From the sequence record NC_025447.1: DNA of 64,000 nucleotides, one strand, 5' to 3'. This document shows positions 24,601-45,646 of the stretch, in pieces; positions within the stretch are counted from its first letter, which is position 1, and each line of letters begins with the position of its first letter. The notes under the pieces were generated by a model that saw only the letters and a program-made list of their open reading frames with translations, did no database searches and was not told the DNA's origin. A program made the position numbers and the translations under genes.

Positions 24601-24609
24601 AAAGAATAA

Positions 24610-29818: not shown

Positions 29819-29831
29819 CAAAAAAGAATAA

Positions 29832-29915: not shown

Positions 29916-30074
29916 TAAGATAGTTAATAACGGTGAGTAACTATCTGCTGGTGGATGTAATTCCAGTACTCAAAACTATTTCAAAAAAGTATTGACAAAG
30001 TATAGCAGTACTGAGATAATGTATCTCGTAGGGCGGCAATAGTGCAGCCCACCTCCAAAAGAGCGAGATATAAA

Positions 30075-30290
30075 ATGGCGTTAACCAAACAAGAAATTAT
30101 CGACCGTATCAAAGAGTCAACTGGCTGGTATGTTGGGGACCGTTTAATTGTTAAAGTTCTCGATTATTCAAATAATCCTCTTGCACCGGAACCAGTGGCA
30201 TACAAATTATCCTGGATATCTGCGTTTAGCGGTAAGCGTGAAAGATGTGTGTACTATCCGAACACCGTCGGGCTACAGTTCTGTAAATAA
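30075..30290 (+). CDS. Early hypothetical protein
   Basis: Start corrected; promoter block duplicated at 30309. Confidence 0.65.
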   Translation: MALTKQEIIDRIKESTGWYVGDRLIVKVLDYSNNPLAPEPVAYKLSWISAFSGKRERCVYYPNTVGLQFCK

Positions 30291-30390
30291 ATTTTAATAG
30301 AAAAAGTATTGACAAAGTATATCAGTACTGCAATAATGTATCTCGTAGGGCGGCAATGGTGCGACGGCCCACAAAGTTAGGAGATTCAAA

Positions 30391-30717
30391 ATGAGTACTT
30401 CAATCGCTATCGTTAAAGCTTTCATCCGTACCAATTTCGACCGCATTACTGTTGATGGTAATGATCGGGAAGTAGAATACTCTTTCATTGTTGCACAAAC
30501 CGCAAACGGTGCACGCTATATCTTAAATGACAGTGAAGCTAACCACTACTTCTATAATAAAGGATTACACTACATCCCTAGCGAAGTAGTCTACACTAAG
30601 ATGAATAAGCTGGTAGACAAGATTAACGCTAAAGGTACTATCGATTTACAGTACTGGAGCGAAACCGAACCAGAATACGGATCACATCGTTACCTGAATC
30701 CAGGAATTAAAATGTAA
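30391..30717 (+). CDS. Early hypothetical protein
   Basis: AGGAG RBS. Confidence 0.75.
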   Translation: MSTSIAIVKAFIRTNFDRITVDGNDREVEYSFIVAQTANGARYILNDSEANHYFYNKGLHYIPSEVVYTKMNKLVDKINAKGTIDLQYWSETEPEYGSHRYLNPGIKM

Positions 30718-30806
30718 AAAGTACTTGCATTGTACTTAGAATCAAGTATAATGTTTTACATAGAGAGGGGGAAATGGTTCTCCCTCCTAAATTAAGGAGT
30801 TTTATC

Positions 30807-31208
30807 ATGACCTTCTCAATCACTTCCTTCGCTGACGTTTTAGTACTGGCTCGGACTTTTGGTAAAGATGCACTGGAGTACGCTGTAAGTAATGGCACTC
30901 TCCAACCGGAACAATGCCGCATCATTGGAAACTGTAAACGTTGGGCGGTATCCAATACTATTGCACTAGAAAACTTCAACGATGGTAACAATGAGTATTC
31001 AGTTGATGCAGTATTCGAAGCCGTTGATCTTGGCGGTATCTATAACACTAACCTAAATGATGTGCGTATCGTTCGCACGGGGTTCGGTGCTTATGATGTA
31101 TCTATCCGTGAAGCTATGAACACCGGATACATTAGTAAGGACTTACTTGCTCACATCATGCAGCTATGGACGGAACGTAACGAAGCACGCACTATCTTAG
31201 GACTATAA
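30807..31208 (+). CDS. Early hypothetical protein
   Basis: Start corrected to MTFSITS after TAAGGAG. Confidence 0.75.
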   Translation: MTFSITSFADVLVLARTFGKDALEYAVSNGTLQPEQCRIIGNCKRWAVSNTIALENFNDGNNEYSVDAVFEAVDLGGIYNTNLNDVRIVRTGFGAYDVSIREAMNTGYISKDLLAHIMQLWTERNEARTILGL

Positions 31209-31276
31209 GCATTACACATCACCAAACATCATAGGCCGCTCTCTAGCGGCCTTAACTATATCAGGAGTACATACAT

Positions 31277-31486
31277 ATGTTCTATACAGTATACAGCGTT
31301 CTAGGTACTATTGCTGGCGTACATGATAACGTCGCTGATGCTATGCGTACAGTACTAACACAAGTCCCCCTCAAGCCTAAGACTGTTAAGCAGATGACAG
31401 CTAGACTTACCAGGGCTGGCGATGGCGTGGAAGTATGGCAGGACTACGGGGATACACAGATAATCGTTAGCGTAACGAAGGATTAA
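31277..31486 (+). CDS. Hypothetical protein
   Basis: AGGAG RBS. Confidence 0.7.
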   Translation: MFYTVYSVLGTIAGVHDNVADAMRTVLTQVPLKPKTVKQMTARLTRAGDGVEVWQDYGDTQIIVSVTKD

Positions 31487-31514
31487 TGCGTAAAGGGATC
31501 TAGTACTGATTCAG

Positions 31515-31580
31515 AAAAAAGTCAAGGCGTTTTTAAAATTATGCGTTAAAAAAATGCATAGGTAATCCCTTGACTTTTTT
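31515..31580. repeat. 13 bp perfect inverted repeat at the early/middle block boundary
   Basis: AAAAAAGTCAAGG (31515-31527) and CCTTGACTTTTTT (31568-31580). Confidence 0.7.
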
Positions 31581-31735
31581 GAAATAAAAGGGATTGGACT
31601 ATGGCAAAATGCGTGGGGGGCTAAAGTGCGGGTAACCTTAGCGACTTCGATAAAGGGGTATTACGAATAAAATGTTATTGACTTTTTATACAATTCATAT
31701 ATTATATGATTGATATTATTTTCAAGGGAGTCCCT

Positions 31736-31933
31736 ATGCGTATTTTAACTCAAGCAGAACACCACGAAAGACTTATCAATAACATGGCTATGATAATGTA
31801 TAAGTCACATGAACGTGGTATTGCCTATAAGCGTGAATTAATTATGGCACTATTCATTGGAACTAACTTTCAGGAAAGGTATGTCAAGGATTGGATTTGG
31901 TATTTAATTGAAGATGTAACGAGTAAACTATGA
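31736..31933 (+). CDS. Family B small protein
   Basis: GTNFQE; start corrected after GGGAG; TTGACT promoter at 31678. Confidence 0.8.
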   Translation: MRILTQAEHHERLINNMAMIMYKSHERGIAYKRELIMALFIGTNFQERYVKDWIWYLIEDVTSKL

Positions 31934-32130
31934 AAATGCGTAAATTAACCGAAAAAGAATATCAAGCACTGTTACGTAAAAACTTCACAAAGATTTATAA
32001 TACAGACTCACACGTAGAACGAATGGAGTTATACCTTTTGATTACATTGGGAACTAACTATCAGGATGCATGGGTAACGAAATATGTGGATACATTGAAA
32101 AATGAAATTTTGTCCACGAGGAAACAATGA
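31930..32130 (+). CDS. Family B small protein
   Basis: GTNYQD. Confidence 0.8.
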   Translation: MKMRKLTEKEYQALLRKNFTKIYNTDSHVERMELYLLITLGTNYQDAWVTKYVDTLKNEILSTRKQ

Positions 32131-32336
32131 AAACTATAACACGAACCCAATCATTCGGACTTATCTTGTAATACATGGACTTAATGGTGGATATCAGCAA
32201 AGACCTGCCTAAAACTGCAATTGAAGTTGCAAGAGCAGAGATCCGCATGTTGGCTGTACTGAACACAAACCATCAGGAAGAGTATGTTGACGATTGGATT
32301 CGATTTTTAATAGAAGATATTAAGAGTAAACTATGA
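32127..32336 (+). pseudogene. Family B member with in-frame TAA at codon 15
   Basis: MKTITRTQSFGLIL*YMDL...LNTNHQEEYVDDW...IKSKL; ATGA overlaps at both ends. Confidence 0.75.
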
Positions 32337-32545
32337 TTATATTAACACCTGAAGAATATAAGAAACGTTTTAAATCTGTCCAGGCTGAAATATTACTTAT
32401 ATACCTTTCAAATGCAGATCTTAACTTATCAAGGGTAATGGAGAAGGATTTACTTATGGGTGCATTTTTGGATACAGACTTTCAGGAGTATTATGTAGGG
32501 GAATACTTTATTGCACTTCAGAACCACATTAAGAGTAAACTATGA
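32333..32545 (+). CDS. Family B small protein
   Basis: DTDFQE. Confidence 0.8.
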   Translation: MIILTPEEYKKRFKSVQAEILLIYLSNADLNLSRVMEKDLLMGAFLDTDFQEYYVGEYFIALQNHIKSKL

Positions 32546-32757
32546 TTATTCTAGAAAAATCATATCAATATACTGAACGCATCGCTGCCAGACAACTTGA
32601 AATCCTCATAATATACGAAGATACTTCTGATTTAAACTTAGCTGAGGTATTGGAAAATGAAATACTTTTGGGTGCATTCTTGGGAACAGACTATCAGGAG
32701 TATTATGAGGAAAAGTATTTGTCATCTCTTGAGAAATACATCAGGAGCAAATTATGA
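32542..32757 (+). CDS. Family B small protein
   Basis: GTDYQE. Confidence 0.8.
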   Translation: MIILEKSYQYTERIAARQLEILIIYEDTSDLNLAEVLENEILLGAFLGTDYQEYYEEKYLSSLEKYIRSKL

Positions 32758-32990
32758 AAGTCATTACTGACTTTGAATATAAGGCTCGCTCAGTGAGTGC
32801 AGCGAAGAAAGAGAACACCATCTACCTCACGATGCAAGACATAGAATGGGATAAAATTGAAGAGATGGTTGCTGAAGTATGGCTTGACGCGTTCATGGAT
32901 ACACAGTATCAAAATACGTTCATAGGTAAGTATCTAAATGTTATTATGAAGCACATAGAAAGGAAATCAGCAAATGCGTCACTTAAATGA
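32754..32990 (+). CDS. Family B small protein
   Basis: DTQYQN. Confidence 0.8.
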   Translation: MKVITDFEYKARSVSAAKKENTIYLTMQDIEWDKIEEMVAEVWLDAFMDTQYQNTFIGKYLNVIMKHIERKSANASLK

Positions 32991-33231
32991 TGATGAATAT
33001 TCAAAAAGAGTCAAAAAACTTACTCCGAATGCAAGACTAATCTACGATGACGGTGAACTTTCATGGAACGAGATGAAAGTGAAAGTTCATGAGCTATGGT
33101 TGCTGTACTTTATTGGGACTCAATATCAAGAGAAATATTGCACAGACTTCATAGAACAACTAATGGAACTTATACAGGAAAAAGTAAATGAAAGCATCAT
33201 CGCAAAATATAAAAACTTTATCAAGCACTGA
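32974..33231 (+). CDS. Family B small protein
   Basis: GTQYQE. Confidence 0.8.
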   Translation: MRHLNDDEYSKRVKKLTPNARLIYDDGELSWNEMKVKVHELWLLYFIGTQYQEKYCTDFIEQLMELIQEKVNESIIAKYKNFIKH

Positions 33232-33460
33232 GTATCAAACTGCCCTCTTCTCCCTTCTAAACACTCTCCGCACGAACAATAAACTTTATAATTCCCGTGA
33301 AGCTGATATCGTCAACGGTGATGTGTTTCTTATGAAATTTATAGGAACGAACTATCAAGAAATGTTTGTTCTACGATACATCTCTGCACTGAGAAATCAA
33401 GTTCAAGAAAAAACCCGCCAAGCCCAAAGAGAATGGAAGAGACAATGCAACAAAGACTAA
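33188..33460 (+). CDS. Family B small protein
   Basis: GTNYQE. Confidence 0.8.
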   Translation: MKASSQNIKTLSSTEYQTALFSLLNTLRTNNKLYNSREADIVNGDVFLMKFIGTNYQEMFVLRYISALRNQVQEKTRQAQREWKRQCNKD

Positions 33461-33696
33461 ATCACAAAATGTATTTTAAACTATTACAGAATCTGGGACA
33501 AAAACACTATGATACAGTATCTGAAATATTACCCTATGATATCATGCGTTTAATTCATAGTGAGGCAGAGATGCTTGTACTGATGACAGGCACTGATAAA
33601 ACAGCAATTACCAAATCTATAGATATGTTCATCGATGCACACTGCCAACACATTAGAACCGAGATATGGAGACGTGAGAATGAAAATCCTGACTGA
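33445..33696 (+). CDS. Family B small protein (divergent)
   Basis: EMLVLMTGTDK. Confidence 0.65.
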   Translation: MQQRLNHKMYFKLLQNLGQKHYDTVSEILPYDIMRLIHSEAEMLVLMTGTDKTAITKSIDMFIDAHCQHIRTEIWRRENENPD

Positions 33697-33895
33697 GCAT
33701 GAGTATTACAATAGGTTAAGAACTATACAAGGAAAAGTCTCGTGGACTTTTTTAGATAATTCTATTGCAGAAGCGGACCGATGTGTTATAATAGCTGAAA
33801 TGAAGCTATTACTCTTCATTGGGACAAACTATCAAAGTATCTACATAGACGCATGGTTAAGCAGCTTACGTCTGAAGTCGGTGAGTTTAAAATGA
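33680..33895 (+). CDS. Family B small protein
   Basis: GTNYQS; start corrected. Confidence 0.8.
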   Translation: MKILTEHEYYNRLRTIQGKVSWTFLDNSIAEADRCVIIAEMKLLLFIGTNYQSIYIDAWLSSLRLKSVSLK

Positions 33896-34110
33896 GAAAA
33901 TTAATAGGTTTCGAATATGTTAAGCTTCTACAAACCTGTGGAATCAGAAGGAGAATGATTCAAAAGGATAAAAGAATTGCCGAAGAACGAAAGTATATAA
34001 TGATAACTGAACTTTATGTCTTAACACTCTTAGGCACAAACTATCAACACACTTATGTAGACCTATGGATCGATGCACTACAGAAAGAGGTTAAAAGTAA
34101 ATGCAAATGA
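33892..34110 (+). CDS. Family B small protein
   Basis: GTNYQH; start corrected. Confidence 0.8.
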   Translation: MRKLIGFEYVKLLQTCGIRRRMIQKDKRIAEERKYIMITELYVLTLLGTNYQHTYVDLWIDALQKEVKSKCK

Positions 34111-34331
34111 TTATTTTAACTTACATTGAATATCAAAAACGTTTAAATGCATCCAGAGACATAAGGATTCAAATATTCAATAACAAAAGATTGAAGCCTG
34201 ATATCAGGAAAATCAAAATCATAGAAGCAGAGTTGTGCAACTTTCTAGGGACGAACTATCAGGCAGGTAAGGTAGAAAACTATCTTATAGAACTCATGAA
34301 TAGTATTGAAAATAAATGTAAGGGTAATTAA
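34107..34331 (+). CDS. Family B small protein
   Basis: GTNYQA. Confidence 0.8.
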   Translation: MIILTYIEYQKRLNASRDIRIQIFNNKRLKPDIRKIKIIEAELCNFLGTNYQAGKVENYLIELMNSIENKCKGN

Positions 34332-34332
34332 C

Positions 34333-34599
34333 ATGAAAATGATCAATTTAAGTAAAGATGAATATAACGAGCGACGTGCAAAAATCTCAACTAAACGCAC
34401 CGAAATCTATTACAGCGAAGAAATCAAACACGACAAGAAGATGATTATGATACGTGAGTTGATAATGGGTGCTATGCTAGGAACTAACTATCAAGAACAA
34501 GAGGTACAACTCGTATTAAATGAATTACTAATGGAAATCAGAGGTAAGCTGTACTTTCATCAAATGACCCGCCCACTAAGGTGTACTAGGAATGATTAA
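34333..34599 (+). CDS. Family B small protein
   Basis: GTNYQE; start corrected. Confidence 0.8.
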   Translation: MKMINLSKDEYNERRAKISTKRTEIYYSEEIKHDKKMIMIRELIMGAMLGTNYQEQEVQLVLNELLMEIRGKLYFHQMTRPLRCTRND

Positions 34600-34807
34600 C
34601 ATCACATTACAAGAAAGGTTCATACGCATCAACTATGCAATTTCCAAATTAGATGCTACAATAGGATTTCAAAGTCTACCATTCAAAACAAGAATGATAT
34701 TAGAGTGTGAAGCCAAGTTAGGTGTACTGTTAGGGACGCAACACCAACAACGATATGTGGAAATCTGGATTGACCTTTTAACCCAAAATATATATGAGAG
34801 AATGTAA
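34592..34807 (+). CDS. Family B small protein
   Basis: GTQHQQ. Confidence 0.8.
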   Translation: MINITLQERFIRINYAISKLDATIGFQSLPFKTRMILECEAKLGVLLGTQHQQRYVEIWIDLLTQNIYERM

Positions 34808-35044
34808 ATGCAAAATGAAATGATATACTTAACACCTGCTGAGTTAACAGAAAGACTAGTTAAATCCAGAAGATATACAAATCAACTTCCTCACAACCCA
34901 AACCAGACCCCAGCCGAAAGGAGTGCAGAAGTTTTATTCCAATCACTACCATACCTTCTTGGAACTAATAGACAAGAGTATCATATCGAACGTATAATTA
35001 AATATCTTAAAATTACTATTAAGGAAAAAGTAAATGCAAAATGA
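34808..35044 (+). CDS. Family B small protein
   Basis: GTNRQE; recent duplicate of next gene. Confidence 0.8.
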   Translation: MQNEMIYLTPAELTERLVKSRRYTNQLPHNPNQTPAERSAEVLFQSLPYLLGTNRQEYHIERIIKYLKITIKEKVNAK

Positions 35045-35279
35045 AATGATATACTTAACATATAATGAATACGTCGAGAGATTAGTTAGTGCCAAGAGAT
35101 ATGCCAATCAACTTCCTAATGATCCAAACCAAACCCCAGAGGAAAAGAATGCGGAAGCTCTATTCCAAGCACTACCATACCTTCTTGGAACTGATAGGCA
35201 GGAGTATCACGTTGAACGTATAATTAAATCTCTTAAAATCACTATTAAGGAAAAGATACATGAAACACTTGACAGATGA
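35034..35279 (+). CDS. Family B small protein
   Basis: GTDRQE. Confidence 0.8.
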   Translation: MQNEMIYLTYNEYVERLVSAKRYANQLPNDPNQTPEEKNAEALFQALPYLLGTDRQEYHVERIIKSLKITIKEKIHETLDR

Positions 35280-35490
35280 TGAACATGGGCTTATAGTAAT
35301 GGATGTAATCAACATCGAATACAAAAAGTTGATACGCTACCGTTGTTATGAAGATAAGCAACTAGTTCTAGCAGAACAGAAGTTGTTTCGACTCTTAAAC
35401 ACAAACTACCAAGCACAATACGAAGAATCGTATATGTACCTTTTGGCGAGGAAAGCAAAAAGAGATTATGAAAATTTTAAGCAAAGGTGA
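35260..35490 (+). CDS. Family B small protein
   Basis: NTNYQA. Confidence 0.8.
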   Translation: MKHLTDDEHGLIVMDVINIEYKKLIRYRCYEDKQLVLAEQKLFRLLNTNYQAQYEESYMYLLARKAKRDYENFKQR

Positions 35491-35689
35491 TTCAGTAATA
35501 TTACTTATAGAGAGTTCAAGTAAATTCTTAAACATAACACTGTCTGATATAGATGAAGATGATAAAGAAGTACTGAGAGCAGATTTAAGAGTACTGTTAC
35601 ATCTCGGAACAAACCTACAAGAAGAATATGTAGAGTGCTACATCAATGAACTTAAAGAATCAGTACTGAGAAGATGCAAATGCAAATGA
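35468..35689 (+). CDS. Family B small protein
   Basis: GTNLQE. Confidence 0.8.
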   Translation: MKILSKGDSVILLIESSSKFLNITLSDIDEDDKEVLRADLRVLLHLGTNLQEEYVECYINELKESVLRRCKCK

Positions 35690-35907
35690 AAATGATTACC
35701 GACGAAGAATACCTAACAATTATAAATGGATTGTTTTTGAAGTTGTTTGTTATTAACACATCAGATATACCAGATATGGATAAAATTATTAAGAGAAATG
35801 AAATCTATGTTCTAGCTACCCTGGGAACTAACTATCAAGAATACGATATTAATGATTATATTAATACACTTAAACGAGCGATTGAACTAAAATGCCAAAA
35901 CCACTAG
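35686..35907 (+). CDS. Family B small protein
   Basis: GTNYQE. Confidence 0.8.
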   Translation: MKMITDEEYLTIINGLFLKLFVINTSDIPDMDKIIKRNEIYVLATLGTNYQEYDINDYINTLKRAIELKCQNH

Positions 35908-36107
35908 GAACAGCAGAATACATTGAACTCATGGGATTACACTTCTCATCCTTTCAGAAACTTATGCGAGAATCAAAGAATGATTTAGAATATACCATCA
36001 GAGGTTCAGATTTAAGAATGCTTCTCACCCTAGACACAGATTCCCAAGAGCGTTTTGTCAATGAGCACATTAGAGCACTTTTAATGGAAATTCAAAGTAA
36101 ACTATGA
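35892..36107 (+). CDS. Family B small protein
   Basis: DTDSQE. Confidence 0.8.
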   Translation: MPKPLGTAEYIELMGLHFSSFQKLMRESKNDLEYTIRGSDLRMLLTLDTDSQERFVNEHIRALLMEIQSKL

Positions 36108-36319
36108 AGGTAATATCAAACCAAGAGTACTTGGCACTATTCAGGAAGAATAATCACAAATATATGGCACTTGATTCAAGAACTGATATAAGTGAACTTG
36201 AAAAAAATCTTTTGCGTTCAGAGATGATAGTACTGACACTCTTAGGAACACAGCATCAAGAAAGAACTGTTAATTCACACATAGAAATACTTAAGAAGCT
36301 TATACAGGAAAAGTTATGA
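36104..36319 (+). CDS. Family B small protein
   Basis: GTQHQE. Confidence 0.8.
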   Translation: MKVISNQEYLALFRKNNHKYMALDSRTDISELEKNLLRSEMIVLTLLGTQHQERTVNSHIEILKKLIQEKL

Positions 36320-36537
36320 GAATCATAACACAACAAGATATTCTTAAGTTCACAAGGGTTCATGCATCTGAATTTGATGCTATATTATCAAAAAGTTACA
36401 ACAACCCTTATACAGAAGATGTACACTACAATGAATTATGGGTGTATATACTTTTAGGTACAGATCATCAAGAGCAAGCCGTACAGAGGTATTTGAGTGC
36501 TTTAAGTACTGCTACTGCTAATGGAGTATGTGTTTAA
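36316..36537 (+). CDS. Family B small protein
   Basis: GTDHQE. Confidence 0.8.
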   Translation: MRIITQQDILKFTRVHASEFDAILSKSYNNPYTEDVHYNELWVYILLGTDHQEQAVQRYLSALSTATANGVCV

Positions 36538-36538
36538 T

Positions 36539-36781
36539 ATGAAAGTACTATCTGAATTAGAAATGCATAATAGATTATACAAGTACTACCATTTACTTAA
36601 ACCTATACAGAGGATTAAGTGTCCCTTTGAAGTGAAACAGGTTTTAATTTATGAGCATAAGTTCTTTGTATCATTAGGTACGAACCATCAAGAGTACTTT
36701 TTGAAGTTGTACTTGATTACATTAATAGATTTAATTCACTATAAAACCAAACAAGCTAATAAAGAGAAATATGAAAACTAA
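36539..36781 (+). CDS. Family B small protein
   Basis: GTNHQE; start corrected. Confidence 0.8.
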   Translation: MKVLSELEMHNRLYKYYHLLKPIQRIKCPFEVKQVLIYEHKFFVSLGTNHQEYFLKLYLITLIDLIHYKTKQANKEKYEN

Positions 36782-37112
36782 AATTCAACTCAGGGTATAC
36801 ATATCGTATGAAAATATATACGTTAAAAGTAGTCTATGTAAAGATGTAATGGACTACAAAGGTAAACCATTCACAGTTACTTACAGTTTAACAGGAGGTT
36901 TATATATCTCTTTTGCTAATTACGAAAATAATATGTACGAACACATTGACATTGAAGATTTAAGTACTTTATCACCAGAGGAATACTTTCAGGAATCATT
37001 AGTATGGGATTTAGAGTTTCCTATGCCATTAGTACATAAGATGATAGTACTAATGAAAGAATCTAAACAGGAGCCTAATGGTGATTATGAAGAACACATT
37101 ATTGAGTATTAA
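36771..37112 (+). CDS. Family C protein
   Basis: EEYFQESLVWD. Confidence 0.75.
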   Translation: MKTKIQLRVYISYENIYVKSSLCKDVMDYKGKPFTVTYSLTGGLYISFANYENNMYEHIDIEDLSTLSPEEYFQESLVWDLEFPMPLVHKMIVLMKESKQEPNGDYEEHIIEY

Positions 37113-37144
37113 GAGTTCTGATAGTACTGATAGTACAAATGTTC

Positions 37145-37173
37145 TTGACAGTACTTTTCATTACTGATATAGT
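37145..37173 (+). promoter_or_regulatory. sigma70-type promoter
   Basis: TTGACA-17-TATAGT with TGn extension. Confidence 0.7.
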
Positions 37174-37202
37174 GCACCAACGTTAATCATAGGGTACAGA
37201 TT

Positions 37203-37448
37203 ATGTTAAAATTTTTAAATTTCCTTATCGTCTTGTGTATTGTTCTTGGAATTGCACCGTTTGTATTAGCGTATCTGGATTCAGATGAAATGCAGAAGAT
37301 GAATTGCACAAAGACAGGACAGAGTAGAGAAGAGACGGTTATGATGCCTGTAACGGTTATTGTGAATAACATACCAATTACGAACATGATTCCTACCCTA
37401 ACGACAACGTACCAGTACTCTTGTACAGATGGAGAGAGGTGGAGATGA
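37203..37448 (+). CDS. Small membrane-anchored protein
   Basis: N-terminal TM FLNFLIVLCIVLGIAPFVLA; two further Cys in the C-domain. Confidence 0.7.
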   Translation: MLKFLNFLIVLCIVLGIAPFVLAYLDSDEMQKMNCTKTGQSREETVMMPVTVIVNNIPITNMIPTLTTTYQYSCTDGERWR

Positions 37449-37765
37449 AATTTAATATAGCAAAAACATCGAATGTATGTATATTTGGTTATGCAGATGA
37501 GTTAGGTGATATTGACATTCTTTTGTACAAAAAGGATGGTGTTATGCATTTCAAGTACCAGGATGAAGAGGCAGACAATTATCCTTTACCTAATTTAGTA
37601 CAAATGCAGGAAGAGGAATTATTCCAGTACAGCTTAGTATATGACATTGATATTTGCACGATGCCAGTACTAATTAATATTCAAAAAGTGATGCTCGATG
37701 TGTTTGATAGGCTAATACAAGGCACACAAGGAAGAACCATATATGTCAATGTACAAGACAATTAA
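37445..37765 (+). CDS. Family C protein
   Basis: EEELFQYSLVYD; start corrected. Confidence 0.75.
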   Translation: MKFNIAKTSNVCIFGYADELGDIDILLYKKDGVMHFKYQDEEADNYPLPNLVQMQEEELFQYSLVYDIDICTMPVLINIQKVMLDVFDRLIQGTQGRTIYVNVQDN

Positions 37766-37958
37766 TCAAGAATGGAAGACCCAAAAGTACAGGGAATTCA
37801 GTACTAGTTTAACAAAAGATGCATTGAATTTAAAAAGAACAGAGTTTGATATGTTTATTTTTCTTGGAACACGTTCACAGGAACAATACATTCATTATTA
37901 TATAAGTTCATTGCGAACGGAGATCGTATGCAAAACACAGGGTATTATAAAAAAGTAA
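37743..37958 (+). CDS. Family B small protein
   Basis: GTRSQE. Confidence 0.75.
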   Translation: MSMYKTINQEWKTQKYREFSTSLTKDALNLKRTEFDMFIFLGTRSQEQYIHYYISSLRTEIVCKTQGIIKK

Positions 37959-38194
37959 ACCAATATTTGTACGCTACAAAGTACAGGGATTTTTGTTTAA
38001 AGGGTGGTGATGAAGATTTTTCTTTGCGATTATCAGAATTTAATCTGTTATTTTATCTTGGTACATCGGAACAAGAAGAAATGGCACAGAAATTTATCAA
38101 GCACCTTGAACAAAAAATTCATATGCAAATTTTGATGCTTAAGGTACATAATGAGATAAACAAATATGAACCCAACAATAGTACAGGATCTTAA
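37928..38194 (+). CDS. Family B small protein
   Basis: GTSEQE. Confidence 0.75.
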   Translation: MQNTGYYKKVNQYLYATKYRDFCLKGGDEDFSLRLSEFNLLFYLGTSEQEEMAQKFIKHLEQKIHMQILMLKVHNEINKYEPNNSTGS

Positions 38195-38552
38195 ACAAGT
38201 AATATTCCTTTTGAATACAAGAAGTGAATTGTATACAGAGTTAGAAGAGATTAATGCATTTTATCAGAATTTTGTAATTCAAGAGTTCAGTGATTTAATT
38301 ACAGATGCATTATTTGAATTCTCGGAGAAATACAAAGGAACAGAGTTCAGTGTTAAGAATGTTATTCGTCCAATTACAAGGAAAATTATATTATCACATT
38401 TTACATTTGACAATAAAGATTTATTCAGTCATAATCCAAGTACAGCTTTATATTTTATTCCTGATTCAGACAAAAATCATCCTATTCATTACGGATGGAT
38501 TTTGTCGTACATAGTACAAGGAAAGGAGTATCCTATTAAATGGAACGATTAG
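38166..38552 (+). CDS. Hypothetical protein
   Basis: 128 aa ORF in operon. Confidence 0.65.
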   Translation: MNPTIVQDLKQVIFLLNTRSELYTELEEINAFYQNFVIQEFSDLITDALFEFSEKYKGTEFSVKNVIRPITRKIILSHFTFDNKDLFSHNPSTALYFIPDSDKNHPIHYGWILSYIVQGKEYPIKWND

Positions 38553-38701
38553 GGCGATTAGATTATTACACAATTAATACAAATTATTTGTTGCGTAATA
38601 TAAAATCCGATTACAAAATATGGATAAAGAACAGAGATAGTATGTGTTATGAATTTTATTTAGATTATGCCATCAAACGCTTTTTAAGAGAAGAACATTA
38701 A
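38540..38701 (+). CDS. Small hypothetical protein (53 aa, not in track)
   Basis: AGGAG RBS; MERLGRLDYY... Confidence 0.55.
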   Translation: MERLGRLDYYTINTNYLLRNIKSDYKIWIKNRDSMCYEFYLDYAIKRFLREEH

Positions 38702-38892
38702 TGCACACCACGCACACAGAGCACAAAAATACAAAAACGATAAATGTTTTAAATGATTCTTTATTGGTGAGTATAAATTTATATTATAAAATTCATTTAA
38801 ATGGTGGTATTGAAAATTTTAGTTATTATTTGAGTACAATATCGCAAGAGCATTTAATATACCAAGATCATTTATTGCACCCGAATCCATAA
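38701..38892 (+). CDS. Hypothetical protein
   Basis: TAATG coupling only. Confidence 0.45.
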   Translation: MHTTHTEHKNTKTINVLNDSLLVSINLYYKIHLNGGIENFSYYLSTISQEHLIYQDHLLHPNP

Positions 38893-38900
38893 GGCAAATT

Positions 38901-39446
38901 ATGAATGATATAGAATTATTAGCACACAAGATTAGTACAATAATGCTTATCCTCAATAACAACCATCCTATATCGAAGATAGATGGAATCCTGAGTCAGA
39001 GGACAGGTGGTAGTTTATATTTGACATTAACAGAGGTTATCGCAAGGAATTACATTGATATTGAAATCGAGAACAGTGATGCATCAGGAAAGGTTGATGT
39101 AGGTGCATTAATCAGTTCAAATCCAGTATCAGCATCCCCATTGACCAAAGGTGTTAGTACAGGATTCGAAGGGTATTTGTGGTACAATACCAATGATGAT
39201 TATTTTATATATCAGCATTCCAATACAAATTATGATGAAGACAAATTTCAGTTCATAGACCCTTATGATGAAGCTGAAGTATTTCAAAAATCATTAATCA
39301 CAAAACCGCATGAGATGATGTATCTAATGTTATTCAGTACAATGCATTTGAATCCATTAATTAAAGGTTTAAAATTTTATATTCAATTGAATTTAGTCCA
39401 TGTAGTTTATGATTTATTAATGCAAGGATATAGTTATGAAGTATAA
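38901..39446 (+). CDS. Family C protein
   Basis: EAEVFQKSLI. Confidence 0.75.
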   Translation: MNDIELLAHKISTIMLILNNNHPISKIDGILSQRTGGSLYLTLTEVIARNYIDIEIENSDASGKVDVGALISSNPVSASPLTKGVSTGFEGYLWYNTNDDYFIYQHSNTNYDEDKFQFIDPYDEAEVFQKSLITKPHEMMYLMLFSTMHLNPLIKGLKFYIQLNLVHVVYDLLMQGYSYEV

Positions 39447-39753
39447 AATGCTTAATACAGTATCAGGGGTATATGTAGAATTAGAATCCGATTATTCAGA
39501 TGGATGGAATTTTATTAAACGACACGATAGAAATACATGGTACATGGCACATTTGGATAATGACGTAATAATAGATAATTTTGTCGATTTTAATACATTA
39601 TCAGAAGAAGAATTTTTCCAAATGCAATTTGTGCTTGATACAAATGGATTTGATTTGCTATTATTAAGGAATATTCAGAAAGCGGTTAATGAATTCATAA
39701 TCCAAAATAATTCAGGTAAAATGGGGATGTTCCATGATCTGGAAGTACAATGA
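39436..39753 (+). CDS. Family C protein
   Basis: EEEFFQMQFVLD. Confidence 0.75.
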   Translation: MKYKMLNTVSGVYVELESDYSDGWNFIKRHDRNTWYMAHLDNDVIIDNFVDFNTLSEEEFFQMQFVLDTNGFDLLLLRNIQKAVNEFIIQNNSGKMGMFHDLEVQ

Positions 39754-40291
39754 AATTCAGTACACCTACGCTAATGCAATCCTTATGGGACAAAAGTTAG
39801 CTTGTATTGTTGCAGCCTTATATAATGCCCAGAAATATCACAAGCGTCATTTCCACAAATGTATTGGTATTATTCCATCGAAGTACAATACATATATTGC
39901 GTGCACGAGTCATTTTGATAAACGATTCAATACACCTGATACCCCAAATGCCAGTAGTGTTATTGGTCTTTTGGATTTCGCACCTGGTGCTGTTATTGGA
40001 AAGAATGATTTAGAGTACACATGGTATAATAAAAATGCCCCGTTAGTAATGGTAAAATATGATACAGAAACGAATAAAACAATAGAGTACAATACATATA
40101 AATCAGAGGAAGAATTTTTCCAAGGTTCATTGCTTGTGCCAGTGCGTTTGTTGTTTTATAATGTCCTTATTAGTACAGTACACAATAGTCCATTACACAA
40201 GAATCACAAAATTAATTTCAATTTTTGTGCTTATGCGATTGATGGTGTGTATGAGTGTTTAATGGAGGTATTGAGTTATGAAGCTGAATAA
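39734..40291 (+). CDS. Family C protein
   Basis: EEEFFQGSLL; similar to 38901. Confidence 0.75.
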   Translation: MIWKYNEIQYTYANAILMGQKLACIVAALYNAQKYHKRHFHKCIGIIPSKYNTYIACTSHFDKRFNTPDTPNASSVIGLLDFAPGAVIGKNDLEYTWYNKNAPLVMVKYDTETNKTIEYNTYKSEEEFFQGSLLVPVRLLFYNVLISTVHNSPLHKNHKINFNFCAYAIDGVYECLMEVLSYEAE

Positions 40292-40619
40292 TACATTTGA
40301 TATTAATAAGTTAAGAGAATGGTTTTATAGTATTGAAATTGAAGCCATCCCGTATCATAGATATGAACAATATAATTTAACCAGTATTGATATCAGTGAG
40401 TTGTACGCGTATTATCAAAGTGCATTAGAGATGCATAAGTTATTTTTGAGTACAGATTTTGTTCTAAATTACAATTTTGAGGAATTTAATAATTATAATT
40501 TAGTACAGAAATATGTAGTAGCAAAGTATATGTACCTTCAAGGAATTACAAGTAATTTGGAATTCAATACAGTCCTTGCTTTAGTTGAGGTAATTTTATG
40601 CAGTACATGTATGATTTAG
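40278..40619 (+). CDS. Hypothetical protein
   Basis: GGAGG RBS. Confidence 0.65.
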   Translation: MKLNNTFDINKLREWFYSIEIEAIPYHRYEQYNLTSIDISELYAYYQSALEMHKLFLSTDFVLNYNFEEFNNYNLVQKYVVAKYMYLQGITSNLEFNTVLALVEVILCSTCMI

Positions 40620-41104
40620 AGTTCAGCTTAGATGCTGCATTTAAATATGTTCACAAGATAGAAACAATATACAGTACATTATGTGCAATACAATCAGTAT
40701 CATCTGAGTTTGATGTTGGTGAAAAATATCAGGTATGGAATAATACATTTCTAAACAAAGAACGTTGCTCTACGGGGTTTAATATTTTAACATTTAATCC
40801 CAGCAATTGTTACCCAGAGAAGCATGAACGTTATCCGAATGACGACATGTGGTTTGATTACACAAAAGATGGTGATATGTCATCCCTTGTAGTTCCTGAT
40901 GATTTTAATGCCGAAGATTTAACGGAAGAGTGGTGGTTTCAACAGAATTTAGTACACGATGATATTGATTTATTTTTTTATGTAGTATTTAAAATGCTTT
41001 ACCACAACAATATATTAAAAGATAGTGTGTTTTTTTCATGTCTATATATTGATGATTTGTACAATGAAATCCAAATCAACATTCCCAGCACGCCTGTATC
41101 GTAA
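40598..41104 (+). CDS. Family C protein
   Basis: EEWWFQQNLVHD. Confidence 0.75.
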   Translation: MQYMYDLEFSLDAAFKYVHKIETIYSTLCAIQSVSSEFDVGEKYQVWNNTFLNKERCSTGFNILTFNPSNCYPEKHERYPNDDMWFDYTKDGDMSSLVVPDDFNAEDLTEEWWFQQNLVHDDIDLFFYVVFKMLYHNNILKDSVFFSCLYIDDLYNEIQINIPSTPVS

Positions 41105-41129
41105 GATATGGGCTTTTTTCGTTTTGGTA

Positions 41130-41158
41130 TTGACAAAGAAGTGCAAAGCTGTTATCAT
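41130..41158 (+). promoter_or_regulatory. sigma70-type promoter
   Basis: TTGACA-17-TATCAT with TGn. Confidence 0.7.
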
Positions 41159-41186
41159 GTGTAATCATTTTAAAGGAGAACATATA

Positions 41187-41687
41187 GTGAGTTTCATAAT
41201 CCCAAGTACATACGAAGATGCATCAAGTGCAGTTCATAAGATTCATTATATTTTTAATTTAATTATTAGATCTGCAAAAATTAAAATGTATGCACCTCTT
41301 GTGACAAATAATCGAAATGAAGAAATTTTTATTAGCACAGACAAAATTATTTTTCCATATTTCAATGAAGATAGATTGTGGTTCATACATTTAGCTGCAT
41401 TACAAAAATATAAGATGTCAATTCGTAATAATTTGGTTATACCGTTATATCATCCCGATATTGGAGAGGATGAGTATTTTCAGTACAGCACAGTACACCA
41501 CCATGAAGATATCTTTGCTGCTATGCTTATTGCTAAATTGAACACCGTTGATTTGGAGCAGTACAAATACAATAATAAATCATGTAAGATCATAATCCCT
41601 GCATTCATAGCTCTTTATGATTATGTGGTGCATAACAAAAAAGATGATACATATGCTTTCAATGAAGAGTATTTGAATTTTTTTTAA
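41187..41687 (+). CDS. Family C protein
   Basis: GTG start after AAGGAG; EDEYFQYSTVH. Confidence 0.75.
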   Translation: MSFIIPSTYEDASSAVHKIHYIFNLIIRSAKIKMYAPLVTNNRNEEIFISTDKIIFPYFNEDRLWFIHLAALQKYKMSIRNNLVIPLYHPDIGEDEYFQYSTVHHHEDIFAAMLIAKLNTVDLEQYKYNNKSCKIIIPAFIALYDYVVHNKKDDTYAFNEEYLNFF

Positions 41688-41696
41688 GGAGAACAT

Positions 41697-42224
41697 ATGA
41701 GCAGTGACGTGCAGAAATCAATGACATTCAATGAAATTGGTGCATTTAAAGATAAGATCATTGATTGTCTTGAATACATGATTTGTAGTAATATCGAAAG
41801 TATCGAGATATTTAACAAGACAAATCGCTCTTACCATATGATGTACATTGCAAACAATAATGGTATCATTCCATTTATTTCGGATAGTACAATATGGTAC
41901 GCATGTGATACGAAAAAAACCACAATAGGTTTACATTTATTTGAGACACATTATGATCTAATTATTCCTGAACATTGTATGCAAGAAGAAGAATATTTTC
42001 AAATGCAATGTATACATTCACCATTAGTGTTGTTTAGTTTATATATTATACCTTATATCACCAAATGTGTTCATGAGAATAAAGCTCCGTGGAATCATGA
42101 ATTTGTATCGTTGAAGTTATTGTATAATGTATTAGTAGAATATTATGATTACAGGCACAATGGTACAATCAGTGATGTATGGGATTTTGAATCGCTAAGG
42201 GTGAAAACATACACAGGTGAATGA
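41697..42224 (+). CDS. Family C protein
   Basis: EEEYFQMQCIH. Confidence 0.75.
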   Translation: MSSDVQKSMTFNEIGAFKDKIIDCLEYMICSNIESIEIFNKTNRSYHMMYIANNNGIIPFISDSTIWYACDTKKTTIGLHLFETHYDLIIPEHCMQEEEYFQMQCIHSPLVLFSLYIIPYITKCVHENKAPWNHEFVSLKLLYNVLVEYYDYRHNGTISDVWDFESLRVKTYTGE

Positions 42225-42840
42225 TATGACCAGAATTAAAATGTATGATTTGATGCAGTACAGTAAAATTGCCATTCCAGTGCTTAATAAAGTGCTGGAT
42301 GCATTCATTGCCAAATACCCTGAGAATTCAGTGTTATGTATTCCATTTAGTGTTCCAGATAAAGATGATATATTCCAAGTGAATGTCAGTACACGTGGTA
42401 TTACATTGCAGCAGAAATACATGGATACGGAATATTATGGAATAAAGTTGGATTCAGTACAGGGTTCAAAATCAGCCTATGATTTTTTTGTTCCTAATAA
42501 TATAGAGTCATGGGAAACAAACATTTCAAAGAAAGATGAAAATGATGTTCCTATTAGTGGTGTGTTCAACAATAAAGTTTTTTATTATTACGAAACCGAC
42601 AAATTCCCTGAAGAGTTATATTACAATTCAGAAATGAGTGAGGATATAGATGCATTCATGTTTCAATTATCTTTAGTACATGATATCATTGATGTTCAAG
42701 AGTTAAGAGCAGAAATCAATTTAGCTAAAGAGTTATCGGACATGCTGCCACCGTTTAGTATGCTTTTTTGTGAAGGAGGTTATTTTTCAAAAGAAGTGTT
42801 TGAACATTTCGTAGATGTTGTAAAAGGGTTGGATATATAG
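42217..42840 (+). CDS. Family C protein
   Basis: DAFMFQLSLVHD. Confidence 0.75.
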   Translation: MNDMTRIKMYDLMQYSKIAIPVLNKVLDAFIAKYPENSVLCIPFSVPDKDDIFQVNVSTRGITLQQKYMDTEYYGIKLDSVQGSKSAYDFFVPNNIESWETNISKKDENDVPISGVFNNKVFYYYETDKFPEELYYNSEMSEDIDAFMFQLSLVHDIIDVQELRAEINLAKELSDMLPPFSMLFCEGGYFSKEVFEHFVDVVKGLDI

Positions 42841-42841
42841 T

Positions 42842-43036
42842 ATGCTTATAATTGATATTAAACAAAAATACCGTAAGTTTGATTGGTTCACCGATAGTTT
42901 CCAGCTTGAATTATTACATATGAATATCAGTGAAACATTATGTGCAGAAACACAAGATGAATTTGATGATAGAGTGATGAACATAGTAATGCTTTCTTGC
43001 TTTAAACATTTTGGTTATTTTTTCGGACAGAATTGA
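42842..43036 (+). CDS. Small hypothetical protein
   Basis: Fills operon gap. Confidence 0.55.
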   Translation: MLIIDIKQKYRKFDWFTDSFQLELLHMNISETLCAETQDEFDDRVMNIVMLSCFKHFGYFFGQN

Positions 43037-43045
43037 GGTAAAAAA

Positions 43046-43561
43046 ATGCATCAACACAAGCATCATTCATATGATTTTGCAATTAACATTATGAAGTTCA
43101 TTCGAGCGTTGGAGGATGGGAAGCTTAGTCATAAGTACAGGAAAGAGGGTAACAATTGGTTCAGAAATGATTCCGAGTTCAGTTGTCATAAAATCGTGTA
43201 TAGTAATCAGTACAGTGCCAATTACCTACAAGATGTAGTGATGTGTTTTGAATACGTGTTGCAGTTCAGGGGTTCAATCCAAGATGAGTTGATGGAGAAC
43301 ATGTACATCCGATACCTTCCAATGCTCAAAGATGAAAATGTATTATTAAATTCAATATACCAACGAGTTCGTGAAATTGAGTGCAGGGATATATTAGATA
43401 CAGAAGAATCGTATTTCCAGCATTCCCTGATTTATTCACCTGATTTATTACAGGTACATAATTTGTTTAATACATTACGTCAGAACATCAGTACAGACAT
43501 ATTTTTGTCATTATCGGATTATGATACATTTGTCAAAGATTTAGAGGAAATAGGTTTATGA
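43046..43561 (+). CDS. Family C protein
   Basis: EESYFQHSLIY. Confidence 0.75.
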   Translation: MHQHKHHSYDFAINIMKFIRALEDGKLSHKYRKEGNNWFRNDSEFSCHKIVYSNQYSANYLQDVVMCFEYVLQFRGSIQDELMENMYIRYLPMLKDENVLLNSIYQRVREIECRDILDTEESYFQHSLIYSPDLLQVHNLFNTLRQNISTDIFLSLSDYDTFVKDLEEIGL

Positions 43562-43899
43562 GTCGATTTTCGGTTTGTGTGGTAAACATAAAAAGTGATG
43601 GTAGTTTAATTGAATTAGATGTATATGATGATGATAATGCATATGGTATTAAAGTACAGGACAATGATGTGCAGTTCAGTTCAAGAACAAATTTTGAAAA
43701 TCCAGTCCAAGTTCCTAATTTCATAGAAGATGAAGCAGCACGTTTCCAATACGAAACGGCATATGACAATGTACATATGCATATTATTATGCAACAAAGT
43801 TTAGTTCAATTAGTTCCTTTGTTCAGACAAAATATATATGTACATGAATTGTCGATCAATGACGTTCGCAGTTCCGTATTGTTCGATACAAATATGTAA
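43558..43899 (+). CDS. Family C protein
   Basis: EAARFQYETAYD. Confidence 0.7.
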   Translation: MSRFSVCVVNIKSDGSLIELDVYDDDNAYGIKVQDNDVQFSSRTNFENPVQVPNFIEDEAARFQYETAYDNVHMHIIMQQSLVQLVPLFRQNIYVHELSINDVRSSVLFDTNM

Positions 43900-43909
43900 G
43901 GAAAGTACA

Positions 43910-44461
43910 ATGAGTTCAATGAGTTTATTAGATACATTAGAAAAAGACAGAAGTGCAATTAAGCGTTTAAAAGAGCAAGTACAAAAGATTGTATACAACG
44001 TTGATAAGTTTGAAGTCCCAGGAAGATTTGGTGATATTTCCCATACGGAGATCAAATCCCTTAAGTCAGATTTGTTGATTAAAAATAAAAATGGGTTGAT
44101 TTTAGTTTTGAGTTCAGATATGATGGGGGCAACACATAGTTATAATGCAGTATCGGTGCGTTCCGAGTGTGAAGGTATATATCTATCACAGGGTTTCAAT
44201 AGCGAGACACAGGTTTGTTTTTGTGATGCAGTACATGATCCTATGAAGTTCACGAGAAGTGAAGCCCAAGCGTTATTAGAGCTATCAGACGAGAGTTTGT
44301 TTCAGTACAGTACAATGTATGACAATGATAAGCTTCGTTGTATGTACGCTGTAAAGCATTATACACAGGAGTTTTCTGGATTTGCATACCTTTTAGTTAG
44401 AACCAATACCAGATATATTGATATGTTAGAAGATTACATCGATAAAGTTGTTAATGTATGA
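43910..44461 (+). CDS. Family C protein
   Basis: DESLFQYSTMYD; start corrected. Confidence 0.75.
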   Translation: MSSMSLLDTLEKDRSAIKRLKEQVQKIVYNVDKFEVPGRFGDISHTEIKSLKSDLLIKNKNGLILVLSSDMMGATHSYNAVSVRSECEGIYLSQGFNSETQVCFCDAVHDPMKFTRSEAQALLELSDESLFQYSTMYDNDKLRCMYAVKHYTQEFSGFAYLLVRTNTRYIDMLEDYIDKVVNV

Positions 44462-44476
44462 TTTTGTGATGGGATG

Positions 44477-44653
44477 ATGCTAATGAAAGAGTTATTTGAA
44501 GATCAGTTCAATACATATGTGGATAATATTCTTTATTCCAGTCGTGCCAGTCAACGAGGAAATCGTGCTTACAATATTGATTACCTATTGGTGGTGCTGA
44601 GTTCACAGTACACCAATGCGGTACAAAGGGTTTATTATGAAAAGTGCAAGTAA
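44477..44653 (+). CDS. Small hypothetical protein (58 aa, not in track)
   Basis: MLMKELFEDQFNTYVDNIL... Confidence 0.5.
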   Translation: MLMKELFEDQFNTYVDNILYSSRASQRGNRAYNIDYLLVVLSSQYTNAVQRVYYEKCK

Positions 44654-44846
44654 TAGTGATATTGCAAAGGAGAAGTTTAAGTGCAGTTTAGATTACGGTT
44701 TAAATGATTTTCTTACATGCACAATGTACAGGAATGATGATTATGAGCAATCCGTAATTTCGTTGCACAGATATTTCGAAATAATTTACGCAAGATATCT
44801 TAGAAGGTTAGAGGGAATAGGGGATTGGAATTATGATTACGTTTGA
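44616..44846 (+). CDS. Small hypothetical protein
   Basis: ORF in operon; start uncertain. Confidence 0.55.
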   Translation: MRYKGFIMKSASNSDIAKEKFKCSLDYGLNDFLTCTMYRNDDYEQSVISLHRYFEIIYARYLRRLEGIGDWNYDYV

Positions 44847-45069
44847 AGAACCAGAAACAATGAGTCCATATACGATGAAAGGTTTTGAATTCATGATGGA
44901 TTCGATTTTGAAGAATTCGTGTTTAGTACACAATCCTGAGCGTGCAACAGTGAGGGAATATCAGGACAATGCATTACAGCGTGTAATGAATATGTACAGG
45001 AATACGAGTCGCAAGCTTTGTGCGTTGAAAAGGATTGAAGAAATCAAGGTTTCTAGGCTGAATAAATAG
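44833..45069 (+). CDS. Small hypothetical protein
   Basis: ORF in operon. Confidence 0.6.
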   Translation: MITFEEPETMSPYTMKGFEFMMDSILKNSCLVHNPERATVREYQDNALQRVMNMYRNTSRKLCALKRIEEIKVSRLNK

Positions 45070-45268
45070 AGACGTTTCATTTTGACAGGCCGCAGGGGGG
45101 GTCAAAAAAATTTCCGCTGAAAAACATGCTAAGGTATATGTTTAATATAAAGTTTTATATTGTGTTTTTCAGAGTACAGTTCATGTTTCCTGAAACAAAA
45201 AAAATACCCCGCCACCGAACGTGCTCTTTATATTGGAGTTTACCTTATTAATTATAGTAGAGATTAAG
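45070..45268. other. Structured intergenic island
   Basis: TTTTGAC..GTCAAAA, CTGAAAAACA/TGTTTTTCAG, AATATAAA/TTTATATT and TGTTTC/GAAACA inverted repeats; G7 run. Confidence 0.5.
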
Positions 45269-45646
45269 ATGGAAATAAAATATAATGAATTTTGTGCAAG
45301 GACATGGATGTACACTGGTGAGTTAGTTACGCACTCTAACTTATACAAGGGTGATTTAAACTACGCCAGGGACAAGATTTTAAAGTACTGGAATGCTGAC
45401 TTTTATTTGATGGATTTTAGTACTGGGTTTAGGGGTAAAGCAACCGAGATGTTGGACTATACAGTACTTGATGATGCTGCACTGTTTCAGGAGGCATTAG
45501 TATTTGATAAGAAGTACATCTGTACATTAGAAGAGATGATTGAATTACAGCGTAGAATTAAATGTATTCACAGGGAATGTATAGATATCTGGTGCAGTAC
45601 TGGTGAAGATAATTTTTGTAATCATTTCAATCTAGGGGAAGTGTGA
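45269..45646 (+). CDS. Family C protein (LFQEALVFD subgroup)
   Basis: DAALFQEALVFDKKY. Confidence 0.75.
   Translation: MEIKYNEFCARTWMYTGELVTHSNLYKGDLNYARDKILKYWNADFYLMDFSTGFRGKATEMLDYTVLDDAALFQEALVFDKKYICTLEEMIELQRRIKCIHRECIDIWCSTGEDNFCNHFNLGEV

Follow-up and report, generated by a model that had tools for sequence, protein, structure and literature searches.

A 7.5-kb stretch of the Escherichia phage 121Q genome whose coding strand lacks the triplet ACT

Why should a phage genome be devoid of one triplet, on one strand, over 7.5 kb? This question is raised by a segment of Escherichia phage 121Q (NC_025447, Asteriusvirus, 348,532 bp), which lies within the 64-kb stretch of DNA analysed here, hereafter the window (bases 124001-188000 of the genome; coordinates are in window numbering unless marked as genome). 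The original prediction, made from the letters alone, was that GTACT disappears between 37806 and 45382, leaving about 55 GTACA, 4 GTACG and 1 GTACC. This was accurate, since that interval contains no GTACT and 57, 4 and 1 copies of the other three words, 41 of the 57 GTACA being AGTACA, when base composition would give only ~8 GTACA. Genome-wide, the GTACT-free gap (37801-45385, 7,584 bp) is by far the longest, the runner-up measuring 1,978 bp, and GTACT does resume, at 45385, once a 240-bp intergenic stretch has been passed. However, the pentamer is not the unit that matters, GTACT being missing from this island simply because it contains ACT.

On the + strand, the ACT at 37803 and the next one at 45314 are separated by 7,511 bp, i.e. 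144 times the mean ACT spacing, an interval in which ~144 copies would be expected. The probability of such a gap is roughly log10 P = -59, the next-longest ACT gap in the genome is 459 bp and, when all short words are counted, no other word of 2-5 letters shows anything comparable. Every context is lost (AACT, CACT, GACT and TACT are all absent). The complement AGT is not depleted (25 per kb), and the ban therefore concerns one strand. There is also a gradation among related triplets: CCT and GCT occur at normal frequency (0.9-fold), TCT is down to 0.35-fold in every frame, and ACA is enriched. The loss is thus confined to the sense strand and affects all reading frames as well as untranslated parts, which is the pattern expected of messages evading an interferase. 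The triplet size, single-strand character and graded specificity also recall a primase site, although this is a resemblance only. In a literature search, we found no published account of this ban or of the AGTACT excess described below, and no paper linking AGTACT with jumbo phages. The zone and its surroundings are composed as follows.

~11458-31640, + strand: equivalent of the terminal repeat (~20-kb direct repeat), placed by reference to phage vB_Ec-M-J, whose repeat is annotated at 1-21525
31503-35568, + strand: weaker mirror zone, without + strand AGTAC over 4,067 bp (no gap of this kind elsewhere in the genome is as long)
35569-37144, no strand assigned: middle stretch between the one-sided zones, with ordinary palindromic AGTACT at ~6 per kb
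37145-37173, + strand: sigma-70 promoter found by consensus scan, 11/12 consensus (TTGACA, 17-nt spacer, extended -10 TG-n-TATAGT)
37174-37803, + strand: first 630 nt of the unit, with only three ACT, each within CAGTACT
37203-45069, + strand: genes 343-363 of 121Q, 21 small open reading frames (ORFs) of 56-204 amino acids, written with context-dependent synonymous codons
37804-45313, + strand: strictly ACT-free stretch of 7,510 bp (0 ACT, 191 AGT, 41 AGTACA, 0 GTACT)
41092-41113, + strand: terminator-like hairpin with T-run, followed at 41130-41158 by a promoter-like site (consensus scan only)
45070-45307, + strand: closing intergenic stretch of ~240 bp, ACT-free (0 vs ~4.6 expected)

How can a triplet be kept out of 21 genes? 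The answer lies in context-dependent codon choice in three frames, as is apparent from the fact that synonymous choice depends on the neighbouring codon. With 15 kb of downstream genes on the same strand as a control, (i) Thr is encoded by ACT in one of 129 codons in genes 343-363, as compared to 41% in the control, (ii) Leu is written as CTN after an A-ending codon in one of 56 cases in the island but in 64/176 otherwise (control after A, 97/181) and (iii) NAC is used for Asn, His, Asp or Tyr before a T-starting codon in one of 135 cases but in 136/466 otherwise (control, 94/293). As a result, each reading frame of genes 343-363 contains a single ACT, all three being the CAGTACT exceptions, when ~50 per frame would be expected and 94-111 are found in the control. 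In the island, 68% of the Thr codons are ACA and 46% of the Ser codons are AGT. As for decoding, the record annotates seven phage tRNAs, among them tRNA-Thr(TGT) and, at genome 75464-75555, a tRNA-Ser with the unusual anticodon ACT.

The encoded proteins offer few clues. No Pfam family was found for the first 20 of the 21 (gp343-gp362), a search for relatives of gp356 in IMG/VR returned none, and by BLASTP the island genes are mostly unrelated to one another. The view that gene families run unchanged across the island is weakly supported, BLASTP giving weak paralogues outside it for gp344 and gp358 only; in one relative, PHROG family 13866 is annotated on either side.

The island is embedded in a genome with a strong word preference of its own. 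AGTACT occurs 903 times in 121Q instead of the 118 expected from composition, and the longer CAGTACTG 194 times instead of 3.4; since it is found in all three frames and between genes, AGTACT is a DNA-level signal. Every genome tested has 6-11 times as many copies of it as composition predicts. The excess extends across the RaK2-like group (RaK2, Munch, A4, GAP32, CBB, Hallingskeid and Serratia phage BF), with 850-1235 copies of AGTACT as against 142-187 of its reversed word, and CAGTACTG is found 412 times in Erwinia phage Hallingskeid. In the ACT-free zone, the base that follows AGTAC is A in 41/41 cases and never C or G, whereas composition would give A about half the time. AGTACA reaches 5.5 per kb there vs 0.8 per kb genome-wide (~7-fold), all 41 copies having the same orientation and none the opposite one. 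AGTACA thus looks like a surrogate of AGTACT, the sole ACT-free variant with an A/T pair at position 6, through which the signal is maintained at full density. The original prediction of a functional zone in which a single orientation of AGTAC is maintained was therefore close, one orientation being indeed kept, but it picked the wrong unit, because what is banned is ACT on the sense strand and the loss of the palindrome is secondary.

Where does the ban start and stop? On the left, the ACT density is ~27 per kb as far as the spacer of the promoter at 37145-37173, and drops to near zero no more than 10 nt past the -10 hexamer. This promoter is conserved in PBECO4, TH47, vB_Ec-M-J and Turkey3, as are two of the three exceptional CAGTACT sites (ACT at 37417, 37669 and 37803, within AGTACT at 37414, 37666 and 37800), and the left limit coincides with a consensus promoter in both 121Q-type and Turkey3-type genomes. 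On the right, the zone extends past a weak hairpin and closes with the ACT at 45314, 6 nt inside gene 365 (ATG at 45308). Since depletion begins by a -10 hexamer and ends at the start of the next gene, the ban appears to track the sense strand of what is probably a transcription unit. Judging from the terminator-like hairpin and promoter-like site at 41092-41158, the zone may comprise two consecutive units, split at 41.09-41.16 kb.

This unit occupies a particular place on the chromosome, 6-14 kb inside the left terminal repeat, among small + strand genes downstream of a promoter-rich early region. Direct terminal repeats in relatives are ~20.7-22.5 kb (Sharanji, PMC11895373; CBB, PMC5259590). 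In 121Q, it is in the repeat equivalent and its early promoters (12000-31500) that AGTACT is densest (6-9 per kb, mostly intergenic). The same segment harbours a family of strong promoters in which AGTACT immediately precedes the -35 element (AGTACTTGCAAA, found 11 times genome-wide and always on the + strand). The paucity of ORFs at 12-36 kb is not due to an alternative genetic code, which was rejected because all three kinds of stop codon are present in every frame; this is a promoter-rich terminal repeat with very small genes.

Between the repeat and the promoter lies the mirror zone, where the asymmetry is reversed. TGTACT, the reverse complement of AGTACA, accounts for six of its seven GTACT, and AGT is not banned (14 per kb). 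It starts no more than ~140 bp from where the right edge of the terminal repeat maps and consists of an array of paralogues of ~70 amino acids, in which the contexts of TGTACT recur (GCTGTACT three times, GGTGTACT twice), which suggests that these sites may have been inherited by duplication. The layout, mirror zone followed by AGTACA zone, is found again in PBECO4, TH47, Turkey3, vB_Ec-M-J and Munch.

How old is the rule? It is kept in ten genomes (121Q, PBECO4, TH47, Turkey3, vB_Ec-M-J, JNE01, CRJP21, SHEFM2K, Turkey5 and EJP2), with ACT-free lengths of 7.6 kb in PBECO4, 7.0 + 1.1 kb in TH47, 8.8 kb in Turkey3, 8.5 kb in vB_Ec-M-J, 7.5 kb in CRJP21, 7.6 kb in SHEFM2K, 4.4 + 0.7 kb in each of JNE01 and Turkey5, and 3.7 kb in EJP2, where four of the five ACT present are within AGTACT. 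Salmonella phage Munch, which belongs to another genus, has a 2.4-kb ACT-free version with the same upstream layout, while none is found in RaK2. The proteins encoded in the island have diverged widely in the meantime, the homologues of gp356 being 55-57% identical to the 121Q protein in the Turkey3/vB_Ec-M-J/TH47 group and only ~25% identical in JNE01 and Turkey5.

In two relatives the rule has decayed, with 17 ACT in the 6.4-kb zone of UE-S1 and ~22 in 7 kb of ph0011, created by assorted substitutions. For UE-S1, this is close to the ~19 expected under neutrality, which is a rough estimate of our own. In these same two phages, the palindrome is decaying as well. AGTACT totals 735 in UE-S1 and 748 in ph0011, vs 891-1000 in the other genomes; with Turkey3 as the outgroup, the UE-S1 branch has lost 123 sites and the 121Q/PBECO4 branch 26 (3036 vs 2024 for random hexamers). 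The ratio of AGTACT to random-hexamer loss rates is 0.56-0.58 in UE-S1 and ph0011, and 0.41-0.48 in the genomes that keep the ban. The changes at decayed sites are of many kinds. Sites at the AGTACTTGCAAA promoters differ from decaying sites elsewhere in that they stay conserved in UE-S1 (83%).

A general relaxation or a poor assembly was considered for UE-S1 and ph0011, and rejected, since GCGC and GGTACC are still at zero and the avoidance of GGCC, CCGG and CGCG is ordinary. These words are avoided more widely. GCGC and GGTACC have no copy in any of seven genomes of ~350 kb (121Q, PBECO4, Turkey3, JNE01, EJP2, UE-S1 and ph0011), when our own composition estimate gives ~290 and ~30, respectively, and GGCC, CCGG and CGCG are at ~0.35-0.45 of expectation in the same seven genomes. 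Because the ban and the conservation of AGTACT decay in the same two phages, with these other bans intact, both seem, from genome comparison, to depend on a common factor. The decay may nevertheless amount to a single evolutionary event, since several gene losses, and a split thyA allele, are common to UE-S1 and ph0011.

What, then, would make ACT intolerable on one strand of one unit? The explanation that we rank first, with a probability of roughly 0.35, is that the ban is evasion of an ACU-specific nuclease acting on mRNA. The island would be the main part of a single early operon (genes 343-363) transcribed by host RNA polymerase, and its sense strand is kept clear of ACT by context-dependent synonymous codons. 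Its transcript would escape a nuclease reading 5'-ACU-3' (and, more weakly, UCU) on single-stranded RNA, and the genes of the operon would stay expressed while other messages are cut. The reader would be a nuclease rather than another kind of protein, would act on RNA rather than on a displaced DNA strand, and could be encoded by the phage or by its host. This explanation comes first because the ban starts in line with a promoter and is limited to a single early operon, and because there is precedent for avoiding the sites of RNase toxins. The gradation from ACT to TCT (0.35-fold) to CCT and GCT (normal) is as expected of an enzyme. MazF-family RNases with sites of 3-4 nt, including UACU and UACG, occur in enterobacteria (PMC10864209), and RNA coliphages show a mild avoidance of ACA (0.83-fold) that was attributed to MazF (PMC12151602).

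A series of points weighs against this explanation. No nuclease of ACU specificity has been identified, and a six-frame search of the 121Q genome, which did not extend to host strains, found no PemK/MazF (PF02452). Among known E. coli enzymes, MazF cuts ACA and ChpB cuts ACA, ACG and ACU, yet ACA is enriched in the island. An RNase cutting a triplet present 19 times per kb would destroy all other phage messages. The decay of the ban in the same two lineages as the AGTACT palindrome suggests one reader, acting on DNA. Furthermore, 3-4 AGTACT sites are tolerated within the zone, the intergenic tail past the last gene is just as free of ACT as the genes, and the upstream TGTACT mirror zone has no RNA-level rationale.

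Alternatively, the triplet may be read on single-stranded DNA, as a 5'-(A>T)CT-3' site of either the T4-type primase of the phage, the site having a cryptic 3' T as in the GTT/GCT of T4, or a single-strand endonuclease similar to T4 endonuclease IV. Each AGTACT would in that case combine two sites facing each other and template a 5-nt primer. The top strand of the island, which would serve as lagging-strand template when forks move rightward, or be displaced in an R-loop behind the promoter, would have to stay unprimed or uncut, and AGTACA would retain a site on the bottom strand only. Such readers exist, since T4 primase recognises GTT/GCT, T7 primase GTC and T4 endonuclease IV TCA on single-stranded DNA. 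We rank this possibility second because it alone ties the ban to both the DNA palindrome and the mirror zone. It accounts for a feature that is strand-specific, triplet-sized and graded, for the joint decay in UE-S1 and ph0011, for a partial mirror zone that is conserved across genera and has the hexamer on the other strand only, and for the ACT-free intergenic tail. In addition, a T4-type replisome is carried by RaK2-like phages (PMC5259590). Nothing shows, however, that the primase of this phage reads ACT, and a replication-level reader gives no reason for the ban to start at a -10 element, unless an R-loop at the promoter acts as an origin. ACT is also common elsewhere on both strands (19 per kb), so that priming does not need an enriched hexamer, and AGT is not banned in the mirror zone. 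To our knowledge, there is no case of primase-site avoidance, and we know of no genome that has cleared such sites from one strand. All things considered, reading on single-stranded DNA is possible but rather doubtful.

Could the orientation of the hexamer itself be the signal? A dimeric reader of AGTACT on double-stranded DNA might see AGTACA and TGTACT as an oriented, half-defective site, and such sites, arranged around a centre at ~35.6-37.8 kb that is 4-6 kb inside the terminal repeat, might steer or block the replisome, RNA polymerase, the packaging machinery or the ejection machinery, much like KOPS or Ter. The orientation does flip, from TGTACT only at 31.5-35.6 kb to AGTACA only at 37.8-45.3 kb, and does so in five relatives; the left zone starts at the edge of the terminal repeat; and the invariant A at position 6 (41/41) means that an A/T pair is required. 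On the other hand, this leaves unexplained why every ACT has been removed, not just those in GTACT, and why TCT is thinned. The left zone has no more than six sites, in contexts that recur among paralogues, making duplication possible, and a half-site of 3 bp is too short for double-strand recognition. The bias is also local (4 kb and 7.5 kb), and the palindromic form AGTACT dominates outside the two zones, whereas polarity of the KOPS or Chi type is a replichore- or genome-wide bias with one flip. A polar signal is thus unlikely.

Much less likely still is the other suggestion of the original prediction, that recombination brought the island in from a relative with a different sequence dialect, one that uses AGTACA. 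The G+C content is slightly lower in the island (0.30-0.32) than in its flanks (0.32-0.35), and its alleles are mosaic among relatives, UE-S1 being of the 121Q type and ph0011 of the Turkey3 type. This is outweighed by the finding of the same zone, with the same rule, at the same place in every Asteriusvirus examined, over island proteins that are only 25-57% identical, when an import should be absent from, or differently placed in, relatives and have a donor-like composition. AGTACA is the main form in none of seven whole genomes, and the rule concerns ACT rather than the hexamer.

Chance, local codon usage or inheritance by duplication, without selection on the triplet, can practically be dismissed, even though small paralogous genes are common in the region, because the missing copies are too many (0 vs ~144), synonymous choice depends on neighbouring codons, the island genes are mostly unrelated, and ten genomes diverging by 4-20% have gained no ACT, whereas UE-S1 has gained 17 when roughly 19 would be neutral by our own estimate.

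If ban and palindrome share a reader, its gene might be missing from the phages in which both decay. Seven ORFs of 121Q are present in PBECO4, Turkey3 and JNE01, which keep the ban, and missing from UE-S1. Six of them were rejected. The thyA gene codes for a bona fide thymidylate synthase, and in UE-S1 it is merely split, a 70% allele having taken its place; gp130, with its weak HxlR-like match, is missing too from CRJP21, SHEFM2K and Turkey5, which keep the ban, as gp220 is from Turkey5; and gp467 and the ORFs at 73194 and 99826 are all missing from EJP2, which keeps it as well. The split thyA allele is a curiosity in its own right, interrupted by ~630 bp that resemble an intron or homing element (UE-S1 263330-264880, and also in ph0011), while in other relatives the gene is unsplit and 91-99% identical.

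The sole survivor is gp150 (genome 81194-81613, 139 amino acids, phrog_15789). UE-S1 and ph0011 have a clean deletion of it between gp149 and gp151, the junctions differing from one phage to the other. It is present in every other Asteriusvirus record as well as in RaK2, Munch and Hallingskeid, and in BF, GAP32 and CBB only its C-terminal part was detected. All these gp150-bearing phages are AGTACT-rich, and each AGTACT-rich RaK2-like genus that was tested has a homologue of gp150. The evidence that gp150 is the reader, or a component of it, is nevertheless weak, since UE-S1 and ph0011 share several losses and effectively count as one evolutionary event, and we regard it as a lead rather than a result. 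Its AlphaFold model (predicted local distance difference test, pLDDT, 79) gave nothing below E = 0.2 in Foldseek, and no match to gp150 was found in a protein atlas. VIA-align returned Z ~5 for a ferredoxin-like N-terminal part and ~4 for a C-terminal part with the alpha-beta3-alpha arrangement of a double-stranded RNA-binding domain, without its basic RNA-binding motif. Such model-based matches point to no clear fold and give no basis for assigning a function. An early gene at 19365-19688 (107 amino acids, phrog_6246) also differs, with 93-99% identity in PBECO4, Turkey3 and JNE01, and 40% in UE-S1 and ph0011; no known family was found for it.

It is tempting to merge these threads into one undescribed phage system, dependent on the gp150 family, that reads 5'-WCT-3' (W, A or T) on one strand and is responsible for both the ban and the ~8-fold excess of AGTACT. 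Opposed pairs of sites, as in AGTACT, would be favoured genome-wide, while a lone site within one particular early operon would be lethal. We consider this conceivable, and would not be surprised to see it fail.

Whatever the reader, there are good reasons to look for it. Sequence avoidance is one of the few readouts, from the genome only, of the enzymes that a genome must live with, and a total, one-stranded ban over 7.5 kb points to a strong and so far undescribed triplet-reading activity during infection by these jumbo coliphages. For the AGTACT excess of RaK2-like phages, so far unexplained, the island provides a first handle. An A/T pair is evidently all that is needed at position 6 of AGTACT, and the word can work one-sided, while UE-S1 and ph0011 show that selection on AGTACT can be lost, together with a gene and with the ban itself. 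Functions needed under attack, such as counter-defence or host take-over, may be sought among the 21 ORFan genes of the operon. There is also a practical side, since the triplet rule could be used for recoding genes to be expressed during infection.

How does this compare with known systems? The closest parallel is with the ACA-less messages that escape MazF, where a 3-nt motif is likewise removed from the sense strand by synonymous changes, so that the transcript escapes cutting. However, in 121Q the removal is total over 7.5 kb, concerns one operon of a DNA phage, and is directed at ACU rather than ACA, with no known cognate enzyme and no PemK/MazF homologue in the phage. With phage primases and T4 endonuclease IV, the likeness is in three bases being read on one DNA strand with a graded preference. 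Evasion of type III restriction comes to mind as well, since T7 reportedly has all its EcoP15I sites in one orientation, which defeats the enzyme, and AGTACA is similarly an asymmetric hexamer found in one orientation only (41 to 0). The sites in T7 are merely tolerated, though, whereas AGTACA is ~7-fold enriched, which sets it apart from this class, and restriction of double-stranded DNA cannot explain the underlying triplet ban. Avoidance of restriction palindromes is familiar in phages, and the same genomes do fully ban GCGC and GGTACC, but these are symmetric words of 4-6 bp that are banned across the entire genome, while the ban on ACT is local, one-stranded and 3 nt long. Finally, as with cyanobacterial HIP1, there is a genome-wide iterated palindrome, AGTACT, in which the island is embedded and which it modifies, the difference being that here the palindrome is replaced by a one-sided variant, overridden by a second constraint.

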